From NCBI GenBank assembly GCA_964035545.1, contig OZ037770.1, forward strand, positions 15,552,642 to 15,616,641: 64,000 nucleotides of DNA, given 5' to 3'. Position 1 is the stretch's first letter. Each line of letters begins with the position of its first letter. The notes below the pieces were generated by a model, which made no database searches, was not told the origin of the DNA, and saw only the letters and a list, made by a program, of their open reading frames with translations. Shown here in pieces: positions 36,475 to 51,400 of the stretch. This stretch comes from Bugula neritina (Eukaryota; Animalia; Bryozoa). A program made the translations under genes and the position numbers.

Positions 36475-39400
36475 ATGGCTAAAGGTAAGTCAGTTTTAAT
36501 AAACCATGTATATATAACTTAGTAATCAGTTCCTGTAATCATAGTTTGAGGTGTATACCAATCCTAATATCTCTCTAACATCTTACCCTCATGTATTACA
36601 TAGAATGCCTAAAGTTCAAATGCAAAACACACACAATCAAGAAACAGCTGAGATACTTTTTCTGTGATTCTTTTTATCAAAAATCTATATGCATTTGGTT
36701 TATTTTTAAAACTAGCATTTGCAATATTCTAATTGAGAATCATATAACCCTCTTTATCAACCAGCTTTTATTCTCACTTGGCCAGATACATATTATTTAC
36801 ATGATTGGAAATATAATATAAAAGAGTTCTAATTGTTGGTTTAATAAATGCTATATCTGGCTATTGTAAATAGAAGATAGTATTTTTATTTATTATATAT
36901 GTGATTTGTAGATAGAAGATATAGAATATGGTTCAACACTGCCAGTATAGATGAGTCTGATAGAGAATGGAAGAAGATTACTCCAGATAAAGACTATACC
37001 ATAGATGAGTTGAGACATGAAAGTAGACGTCATACTGTGACTCATGTTATACTGAGGAATGACATTCCTCCAGATATTCACATTCTGTTCCCTCATCTCA
37101 CTCACCTGGTGGTGAAGGAAGTGCCGTCCTCTGCTGGCTATAGAAGGTGATGTGACACATGTTGGAGTGCTCTAACTTCTATAGCATGTAGTATAATATG
37201 TTATATAGTATATATAGTATCTATAGTGTATATATATATATATATATATATATATATATATATATATATATATATATATATATATATATATATATATATA
37301 TATATATATATATATATATATATATATATATATATATATATATATATATATATATATATATATATATGTATATATATATATATAAATAGGTATACGAGAA
37401 ACATTGTTGATTTATTACTTTATTAGGTAAAATAATTCTACTAATATTTCGGGTACCACTGTACCCATCTTCAGAGTAGCAATGAATGAAATTCAAAAAT
37501 TATTATGTTACGTTAGACGTTATGCATGACACAAAGAGTAGAGAGTGGCAGTTATTGTAAATTATTGAAACTTAGGGAGATAATCTTATTTTATATATTA
37601 CGCAGGTCAAAAATTATACTGATTGTTTTGCATAAAAAATAAATTAGAGTTGACAAAAAAAATATAGATATCCAAGTATAAAAATGGCAAGAATTAGTGA
37701 AACTATGCGAGAGTTGAGTAGTGTGGAGCTATTGATATAGTTTTAGTGGTATGGAGTAATTTTGTTTATTGAGTTGCGGTTTTATTTGTTTAATGTAGAG
37801 AGCTTCGGCTACTTTTCGATGGTGGATTCCTTTAAATGAATGATTTAAAACTGTTACATTGTCTATTGATATGTTTCCATGATTAGTGGTAGAGATGTGT
37901 TGATAAATTTTGGAATTGATGTCATTGCAGTGTTCATGTATCCTGTGTGATAGGCGACGTCCGGTTTCGCCTACATATGTTTGTTGACAGGTAGCTTCAG
38001 GGCAGGTTGTTTTGTAGACTAGGTTGTGAATGTGTTCTTTATTGGTTTTATCTTTGAGATTAAAATGTGAACTTAAGGGGGTTCCTTTAAATAAAATCCG
38101 GGCATTGAGTTCATTTGAAAAAGAGTCTGTAATTAATTTATTGAGGGAGCGGATTAGTTTTTCTCCTGTTACTCCTTTATAAGGCAGCTGAAGTAAAATG
38201 TGTTTCCTGTTGTCTTTTTCACTAAGTAGTCCGTCACCAATGTTGTTAATAGTTTTCTCTATTACATATTTAGGGTAACCATTTTTATGTTCAAAAACAT
38301 TTCGAATATAGTTAAGTTCTTGGGTCTTAAGTGCTGGAGTAGAACAGATTTTATTAGCCCTTAATACTAGTGACTTGAGTGTGCTTAGCTTCCACGTTTT
38401 TAGTGAGAAAGAGTTCCAATGTAAATATGTATCGTTATGTGTTGGCTTGCGGAATACTGTGGTTTCCACTGAGCTATTGTGTCGCAAAACTGTAACATCC
38501 AGAAAAGAAAGTGATTTATTGGTTTCTAGTTCGTGTGTAAATTTTATGTTAGGATGAAAATTATTAAGTGTGTTGAGTGTTGTGTTAATATAATCAGGGT
38601 CTATTGTTGCAAATGTGTCATCTATGTATCTCACCCAAGGTGACATTGAATTCAATTTTGGTAATACTTTCTGTTCTAGTTTTGTCATGAATATATATAT
38701 ATATATATATATATATATATATATATATATATATATATATATATATATATACATATATATAAATAAAAGTAATGAACGGTTATAAAATTTGATTTAAAAC
38801 ACTTTATTAGGTACTAATAGTTTCATGTGCATTGAATGTACACAATCGTCAGATAAAATGTTAAGATTACATCTTAGTATTTTTTTTGTATATGGAAAAT
38901 ATTCTACTATACCATTCAAACTGTCATTATTTTTGTGGACATCTCAAGGCATATATCTTTAATTTTTTTCATTTGAATTGCTTTGCTTGCCTGGTTTGCT
39001 ATACTATAGTATAATAGAAGAATTACTCATCAAATTTATATGTATACTTAATTATACTAATACGTGTACTTATACTGCATATTAATTATATTATGTTAGT
39101 AGATAGAATTATATACATGTCTGTTATATTACAGCATATCTCAACTGAGTAATCTTCAAACACTGGATATGTCAAGGAATATCCTGTTTGGTAATCTACC
39201 AGATGATATGTTCACATCTTTACAATCACTGAGAGAGTTGAATATAAGTCACTGTGGACTCAGTACTCTACCAAACAGGTATATGTACTGCAGTATATAA
39301 TATACATAATATATTAATTATATATATAATAGCATGAAAAAGGTAATTCTCTTCTTCAAATTATGACCTTGGTTCTTTAAAGAATGCGCTCTATGGGTGG

Positions 39401-48400: not shown

Positions 48401-51400
48401 TATTTTCTTTTATCTGAATTGTTTTGCTTGCCCCCCCCCCCCCCCCCCCGTACACTATACTAATATAATAGAAGAATTACTCATCACATCTAAGTATACT
48501 TATATACTAGTATTTGTACTTATACTGTATATAATTACTATATTTGGCAATAGAAGAAATTATATACATGTCTGTTATATTACAGCATATCTCAACTGAG
48601 AAATCTTCAAATACTGAATATGTCAGGAAATAAACAGTCTGATAATCTACCAGATGATATGTTCACATCTTTACAATCACTGAGAGAGTTGTATATCATT
48701 GACTGTGAACTCACTACTCTACCAGACAGGTGTGTACTGTATATAAATAAATATATATATATATATATATATATATATATATATATATATATATATATAT
48801 ATATATATATATATATATATATATATATATTATATATATATATTATATATATATATATATATATATATATATATATATATATATATATAGCCTATATATA
48901 TATATATATATATATATATATATATATATATATTTATATATATATATATATATATATATATATATATAGCCTATATATATATATTTATATATATATATAT
49001 ATATATATATATATATATATATATATTTATATATATATATATATATATATATATATATATAAGTGATGAACGATAAAATTTGATTAAAAACACTTGATTA
49101 CTACTAGTTTCATGTGCATTGAATGTACACAATCTTCAGATAAAATGTTAAGATGTAATATAAAAAGAATAAAAACATACTATCTATATATATATATATA
49201 TATATATGTATGAGAAATGTGTGTAAAAGCTATAAAGCCAATGGATTAAAATACATAAATAGATGGAATAAAAGGAATTAAGAGATTAAAATGTCAAGTC
49301 ACATTCTCTTATAGGAAGAGCTTTCTAGCGTGCCTGCATGTTGTTATGATCTCATTGTGGCTGTTGAGTGAGGATAGATGTGGCTTGCAAATTATGAAGT
49401 ATTTTTCTAGCAGGCACAGCTTGCAGAGTGGTAATTGCTTGTTGCATGGTTGTGCTCTGGCTAGAATTTTCTTCTTTATCTCATAAGCTATATTCTTGTT
49501 CTTTAATTTCCAGATATATTTGCTCAGCTCAGTGGAGTTTTGTTTACTGGTGTTCTTGAAGCTGGCTGTGTGGTTATTGTACCGATACTTGAACTGGTTC
49601 TGGGTTAGTCCCACGTATGTCTCTACTGCTGTGTTGTTGTTGTTTGTAACTGTTGCCTGGTAAACGACAGCCTCAGTGCAGCACTGGCCACTCAGTGGGC
49701 AATGGTTTTTAGTTTTGCAGTTACATGGCTTGGTGTGGTGTTCGTGTTCTTCTGATTTCAATACTTTCTTATTGTGACCATTTATAATTGCTGCTATGTT
49801 AGGCATGCAGCTATATGACACTTTTAATGTTTTACTATTAAAAATTCTGTAGAGTTCATGGCTTAGAGGAAACTCCTCGCTGATGATTTTGATAAACTCT
49901 TTTCCGATGTTATTAGTTACGTTTTTACTAAAAGGAGGGTTGAACCATGTTACCTTCCTTCTATGATTTGGTTTCTTTGTGACCTCTGTGGGTGTGTGAA
50001 AATTTAGCTTATGATTGTATCCGCTTTTAATGAGTGCTTGTTGATAGATTGCCGTGTTGTTCTTGAATGTGGTAGAGCTGGATGAGATGGATGAGAGTCG
50101 TCTGTTTATGGATTCTGGAATGTTGCGAATAATAGGGTGGGTTGGATTTTGCATGAACATATGTGAGGATGTTGTTTGGCTTGTTATGTGGTTGGTATAT
50201 CCTGTTTGTGAGGTTGAGGTGGATATCTAAAAAGTTTACTGTTTTTTTATTAGCCTCAATTGTGATTCTTAATCCATATTGTTTGAAAATGTTGCATATG
50301 TCCTTCTTTGTAACCTCGATGGTTCTAGCCGAAGATTTTAAGACACCTGAACCATCATCTCAATATAAACCAAAATTGGGGCCATGGTTGCTGGTCACAT
50401 GGTACAAGAGAAATCAAATTTTATCGCTCATTACTTTTATTTGCTCTGCTCTGCACTGCATTGAGCTCTCTTTAGTGGTAAACACACACGTGTGTGTGTG
50501 TGTGTGTGTGTGTGTGTGTGTGTGTGTGTGTGTGTGTGTGTGTGTGTGTGTGTGTGTGTGTGTGTGTGTGTGTGTGTGTGTGTGTGTGTGTGTGTGTGTG
50601 TGTGTGTGTGTGTGTGTGTGTGTGTGTGTGTGTGTGTGTGTGTGTGTGTGTGTGTGTGTGTGTGTGTGTGTGTGTGTGTGTGTGTGTGTGTGTGTGTGTG
50701 TGTGTGTGTGTGTGTGTGTGTGTGTGTGTGTGTGTGTGTGTGTGTGTGTGTGTGTGTGTGTGTGTGTGTGTGTGTGTGTGTGTGTGTGTGTGTGTGTGTG
50801 TGTGTGTGTGTGTGTGTGTGTGTGTGTGTGTGTGTGTGTGTGTGTGTGTGTGTGTGTGTGTGTGTGTGTGTGTGTGTGTGTGTGTGTGTGTGTGTGTGTG
50901 TGTGTGTGTGTGTGTGTGTGTGTGTGTGTGTGTGTGTGTGTGTGTGTGTGTGTGTGTGTGTGTGTGTGTGTGTGTGTGTGTGTGTGTGTGTGTGTGTGTG
51001 TGTGTGTGTGTGTGTGTGTGTGTGTGTGTGTGTGTGTGTGTGTGTGTGTGTGTGTGTGTGTGTGTGTGTGTGTGTGTGTGTGTGTGTGTGTGTGTGTGTG
51101 TGTGTGTGTGTGTGTGTGTGTGTGTGTGTGTGTGTGTGTGTGTGTGTGTGTGTGTGTGTGTGTGTGTGTGTGTGTGTGTGTGTGTGTGTGTGTGTGTGTG
51201 TGTGTGTGTGTGTGTGTGTGTGTGTGTGTGTGTGTGTGTGTGTGTGTGTGTGTGTGTGTGTGTGTGTGTGTGTGTGTGTGTGTGTGTGTGTGTGTGTGTG
51301 TGTGTGTGTGTGTGTGTGTGTGTGTGTGTGTGTGTGTGTGTGTGTGTGTGTGTGTGTGTGTGTGTGTGTGTGTGTGTGTGTGTGTGTGTGTGTGTGTGTG

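Follow-up and report, generated by a model that had tools for sequence, protein, structure and literature searches.

Brown-algal ROCO genes encode their leucine-rich repeats (LRRs) in shuffled exons under positive selection (Zambounis 2012, PMC3341825; Teng 2024, PMC11378527), while the WD-repeat NLRs het-d and het-e of Podospora exchange repeats within and between family members, have a few positively selected surface codons, and have a demonstrated function in allorecognition (Paoletti 2007, PMC1805685). The window considered here, 64,000 nt of Bugula neritina DNA (contig OZ037770.1, positions 15,552,642 to 15,616,641), contains a gene comparable to both, in which four LRR cassette exons (A-D) precede Roc and COR domains and a caspase. 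The LRR-Roc-COR order, exon-encoded LRRs, phase-2 introns, family expansion, pseudogenes, and a selected LRR face are common to this gene's family and the brown-algal ROCOs. The host, however, is an animal rather than a brown alga, and each algal exon encodes one 72-nt LRR, whereas a Bugula exon of 144 nt, or a Watersipora exon of 141 nt, holds two. In the bryozoan gene, COR is followed by a caspase; the searched text of PMC3341825 does not use that term. Splice variants have been shown for brown-algal ROCOs (PMC11378527), while the bryozoan gene is known here from genome sequence; function is putative in both. A reading of the window made from its sequence alone (the sequence-only reading) had proposed the comparison with Ectocarpus, and symmetric tandem LRR exons, variable exon number, and positive selection at exposed sites are all found here. 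Repeat-unit exchange and a small number of selected surface codons are shared with het-d/e, but those proteins have WD40 repeats and a different NTPase and effector.

Among animal proteins, MFHAS1/MASL1, LRRK1, and LRRK2 have the same LRR-Roc-COR fold; these genes exist in few copies and are not known to include a caspase or diversified cassettes. Lamprey VLR and arthropod Dscam also have modular recognition cassettes with variable surface residues, but VLR is defined by somatic assembly and Dscam by mutually exclusive splicing, while the bryozoan exons are known from a germline assembly. Because the germline gene is complete, it is not VLR-type.

The gene model (36475-59311, plus strand) has 15 exons, all with canonical splice sites, and when spliced for a frame check reads through 1370 codons without a stop; domain searches were run exon by exon. 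The order is a short N-terminal part, eight cassette LRRs, three LRRs with Roc and COR, a linker, and a caspase. The putative first coding exon (36475-36484, 10 nt, ATG) is based on a GT donor, frame continuity, and homologous DNA upstream of four paralogues. Exon 2 (36912-37146, 235 nt) continues the frame and encodes an N-terminal cap-like segment; it has 59 homologues in the genome and no match in a Pfam search. Exons 3-6 are cassettes A (39135-39278), B (39616-39759), C (48035-48178), and D (48586-48729), assigned on splice sites, translation, and frame. The three terminal LRRs, the Roc GTPase with its P-loop, and COR are in a single 2006-nt exon (53283-55288). Roc exceeds the Pfam cut-off (PF08477, E 2.6e-8) and its G motifs could be located in the model; COR, directly after Roc, has a weak match to PF16095 and is supported by fold matches as well. 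The AlphaFold model of this exon (predicted local distance difference test score 88) has LRRK1, Chlorobium (C. tepidum) Roco, and LRRK2 as its best fold matches over the whole length. Two linker exons (55729-55821 and 56854-57044), in frame and conserved in paralogues, lead to six caspase exons (57148-59311) that encode a large subunit, a long linker, a small subunit, and the stop codon, identified from Pfam Peptidase_C14, matches to CED-3 and caspase-8 in the PDB, and frame. No signal peptide or membrane helix was apparent when the gene model was read by eye, without a predictor. The Roc and Peptidase_C14 matches, the intact frame, and the Roc-COR fold match bear out the ROCO-caspase architecture proposed earlier.

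The catalytic His (MTHG) and Cys (ETCSG) of the caspase (57554-58849) align with the corresponding motifs of CED-3. The S1 pocket is altered, with ETCSG for QACRG and SKI for SWR, although the SKI alignment is weak (E 0.44); from these residues, specificity has probably changed relative to the Asp-specific pocket. One paralogue (L036) has Arg at the SWR position, and specificity may vary across the family. The inter-subunit linker is made of 177-nt phase-1 exons, two here (58074-58635) and three in paralogues L042 and L044, and is a second duplicated-exon region.

The four cassette exons have AG/GT ends, are in phase 2 at both boundaries, and encode two LRRs each, and their length, symmetry, and the peptides quoted from them in the sequence-only reading were all confirmed. 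The introns are at least 127 nt with canonical sites. Pairwise, A-D differ at 12-17 nt and 8-14 amino acids (nonsynonymous proportion, pN, 0.09-0.13; synonymous, pS, 0.03-0.09), and the hand count for B and C (13 nt, nine amino acids, one synonymous change) was exact. A duplication introduced by the assembly is ruled out by the 8-12% difference among the exons. The variable columns fall on eight of 12 concave-face x positions defined a priori, compared to one of 18 core and six of 17 other positions (p 0.009), in agreement with the proposal that changes lie at exposed x positions. The framework is mostly invariant as described, except that C and D carry Gln in place of the consensus Leu17. The interval given for the cassettes (39135-48729) does contain the exons, but 7.9 kb of it is an unrelated long terminal repeat (LTR) retrotransposon.

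Near-identity of the introns following B and C had been reported as the contrast to these exons. It holds for the first 147 nt (one mismatch; Fisher p 0.0007) but not for the whole intron, which has diverged like the exon; the tract compared was hand-picked. With the LTR element removed, the whole B-C intron differs from the C-D intron at 34 of 381 columns (8.9%), with 35 gap columns in addition; the similarity stops at nt 147, and the B/C exon divergence of 9.0% is equal to the whole-intron rate (p 1.0). A genome search for the intron piece common to B and C found no other occurrence. C matches B in the flank downstream but A in the flank upstream (3/117 differences), and other A-D flank pairs are 15-29% different, with gaps. 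The earlier statement that each exon was duplicated with its flanking intron therefore stands piecewise only, since the flanks were put together piece by piece through recent exchanges and are not parts of clean duplicates. A 98% flank match between exon D and a neighbouring array proved to be a TA microsatellite, and flanks were recounted with masking. Every nucleotide of B and D recurs elsewhere among the 45 cassettes that are 144 nt long, and in a parse without a null control, both were matched more closely by mosaics of other cassettes than by one cassette alone.

The locus itself is a small and ordinary member of its family. The 216-Mb genome contains no fewer than 73 Roc-COR exons whose identity to this one is 46-100%, and nearly all are open. 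They cluster on two scaffolds, and within 18 kb downstream of each is a caspase exon in the same orientation. A search with the LRR cassette exon returned at least 150 matches in the genome. Cassettes were analysed in nine of the at least 73 loci, where 47 exons were recovered by a scan that missed a few degenerate ones; 45/47 are exactly 144 nt. The intact arrays examined have from about three to at least nine cassettes per gene, and some paralogues have identical adjacent copies (four in one gene), which points to unequal crossing-over.

Positive selection was assessed with our own implementation of GY94 site models, comparing M1a to M2a by likelihood ratio test (LRT). The LRT statistic was 65 for 12 close exons, with a nonsynonymous to synonymous rate ratio (omega) of about 13 at 26% of sites, 186 for all 40 unique exons, and 63 and 29 in two other gene sets. 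In 75 simulations without positive selection, 50 of them with four or 10 independent trees along the exon, the maximum was 21.7; the result at the family level is therefore robust, while that for the four window exons alone is not. Sites 14, 39, and 41 come out as selected in each set, and site 16 in each with one exception; positions 11, 19, 36, 38, and 43 are less strongly selected x positions. In the AlphaFold model the LRR strand occupies positions 9-11 of the repeat register common to the cassettes, which puts sites 14, 16, 39, and 41 on either side of the conserved Asn/Cys, in the loop that immediately follows the strand. Omega is above 1 at a few surface codons, and site models and simulations together uphold the claim of the sequence-only reading that surface LRR positions are under diversifying selection. 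Relative to L051, a gene from another sample that is probably its orthologue (91%) but is without the LRR arm, omega is 0.23-0.34 for Roc-COR, which is under purifying selection, and 0.93 for the terminal LRRs.

Comparison of whole introns in paralogues with full-length duplicated units avoids the choice of tracts, and in two of three pairs the exon still exceeds the intron (9/144 vs 5/1360 and 25/144 vs 33/775 differences; p < 1e-6). In most flank-matched pairs, synonymous exon divergence is about that of the intron and replacement divergence is several times higher, which indicates selection; these pairs were picked for their matching flanks and are not mutually independent. Two pairs have 23% synonymous divergence in the exon and 2.5-5% in the flanks, and so point to exon-limited import from a more distant copy. 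A test resembling the pairwise homoplasy index (PHI) detected recombination in two gene sets (p 0.001 and 0.006), and together with the mosaic pattern of B and D supports the earlier suggestion of exchange among exons. Deaminase-type or adenine-directed mutagenesis was considered for the excess of A/G over C/T changes (41 vs 8) and rejected, since purines make up 88% of positions 1-2 in the hot codons and the substitution spectrum of the introns is balanced.

The reading that we favour, with a probability of roughly 0.72, is that the cassettes are germline building blocks for the LRR arm of a cytosolic LRR-Roc-COR-caspase protein, one of a large bryozoan family diversified by duplication and exchange together with selection. 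Symmetric phase-2 exons can be gained, lost, or skipped without loss of frame, and tandem gain and loss of cassettes has been frame-neutral. Besides tandem duplication, unequal crossing-over and gene conversion over short tracts in the germline would move variant codons among exons and genes, as described for Podospora het-d/e (PMC1805685), and the near-identical intron tracts may be marks of recent exchange. Selection would shield new surface variants from homogenisation, which would leave an exon more diverged than its adjoining intron. A few surface residues have evolved far more quickly than neutral DNA, as they do in immune receptors. The cassettes are likely the sensor arm, and they may bind a variable ligand such as a pathogen, symbiont, or non-self product. 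Roc-COR might then dimerise according to its GTP state and activate the attached caspase, so that the protein would act as an NLR-like sensor and executioner in one chain. We infer a function in immunity or allorecognition.

Several results weigh against this interpretation. The third whole-intron paralogue pair has no exon excess (4/144 vs 35/1197). The LRT for the four window exons alone is 16.5, within the range reached by recombination in the 12-sequence simulations, and the codon models are an implementation other than PAML. The PHI-like test is borderline in this gene's own clade (p 0.07), and the caspase is without the usual Gln and the second Arg of the S1 pocket, so a cell-death output is not assured.

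One alternative accepts the selection and assigns the protein to colony allorecognition, or to a non-immune stress or developmental switch, rather than to pathogen sensing. The evolutionary signature matches that of Podospora het-d/e (PMC1805685), the animal is colonial, and brown-algal ROCOs respond to many stresses. On the other hand, the gene model is without an apparent signal peptide or membrane helix, while the known allorecognition proteins of animals are at the cell surface, and the family is on several scaffolds rather than at one locus. We consider this alternative unlikely.

A somatic or splicing repertoire generator, in which cells skip, combine, or convert cassettes in the manner of Dscam or VLR and partial arrays perhaps serve as donors, is doubtful to a similar degree. 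Any cassette could be skipped without frame loss, splice variants are reported for brown-algal ROCOs (PMC11378527), and an array of eight exons with intact splice sites, 90-93% identical to A-D and followed by a Roc stub only, is about 70 kb downstream. However, the exons are arranged in series with ordinary splice sites and no alternative-exon layout, four exons permit at most 16 skip isoforms and thus little combinatorial room, and identical adjacent copies in paralogues fit unequal crossing-over. The A/G excess is explained by purine-rich hot codons, a search for APOBEC_N found no match (a weak negative), and all of the variation seen is that of a germline assembly. It is slightly less probable still that skipping or conversion with partial-array donors varies these sensor-GTPase-caspase receptors within a colony; if true, the result would be an anticipatory or self/non-self repertoire in a lophotrochozoan. 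The absence of selection, with neutral concerted evolution, relaxed surface constraint, hand-picked tracts, and recombination mimicking omega above 1, is consistent with whole B-C and C-D introns as diverged as the exons, with recombination that inflates the LRT to about 22, and with an overall pN below pS in the C5 cluster, but is largely refuted at the family level, and improbable, given an LRT of 65 far above the simulated maximum, selection at 14, 39, and 41 in all three separate gene sets and at 16 in two, and replacement divergence that, in most pairs with matching flanks, is higher than the divergence of synonymous sites and of introns.

A family of at least 73 one-chain genes under strong diversifying selection would constitute a candidate intracellular immune receptor system in a phylum whose immunity has been little studied. 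A ROCO switch would be used where other animals use NLR NTPases, with an exon design convergent with that of brown algae, and because the output domain is a protease, the immune role proposed for ROCO proteins becomes testable. No description of a bryozoan LRR-Roc-COR-caspase family was found in a search of the open-access literature. The nearest named proteins, about 36% identical, are from Watersipora subatra and were automatically named MFHAS1-like; their genes have an equivalent exon plan, with 141-nt phase-2 cassettes included in series in the gene models. A related gene has four cassette exons in the other sample and six to seven here, a difference to which short-read collapse may contribute.

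The downstream eight-cassette array (L032:3709-8134; G000:C6:15671709-15676134) has four cassettes identical to each other, runs into only the first ~90 codons of a Roc exon before diverging, and has its nearest exon-2 homologue 15 kb upstream, at 42% identity. The array could represent a broken copy, a source of donor cassettes, or an LRR arm that has been transplanted into a different gene. Just upstream of it (L032:1848-2597) is an open reading frame (ORF) with a match to the Pox_A32 packaging ATPase, which suggests a Polinton/Maverick-like insertion. Broken family members include one with a stop in the Roc exon (L046) and one with a frameshifted 143-nt cassette (L048).

The retrotransposon in the B-C intron (40020-47900, minus strand, 7.9 kb) is a young Ty3/Gypsy element, identified from its LTRs, target duplication, ORFs, and Pfam, and is a recent passenger. 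Its LTRs (40020-40429 and 47489-47900) have no mismatch and one 2-nt indel, the 4-nt target duplication is ATAT, and LTRs of its family match at 40 or more places in the genome, at 96-100%. The element has a gag-like ORF and a protease-reverse transcriptase-RNaseH-integrase region interrupted by a stop in pol. At its 3' end, an extra 285-aa ORF (40672-41529, minus strand) has a Cys/His zinc-finger-like motif and no Pfam match. Two further minus-strand retroelement-like ORFs without Pfam matches were taken from the ORF list, one in intron 2 (37729-38754), Penelope-like by motifs read by eye, and one in the intron after D (49309-50160). Each adjoins a copy of a 100-nt piece that follows a TA microsatellite on either side of the cassette block (38767-38867 and 49061-49154; 88% identical). 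Downstream of exon D, the intron that leads to the Roc exon also has a 2.5-kb (GT)n microsatellite (50490-52970), and many other minisatellites are present in the window. Upstream, ORF fragments suggest putative Bcl-2-family (14959-19144) and Oxa1-like (27471-31660) genes as neighbours.

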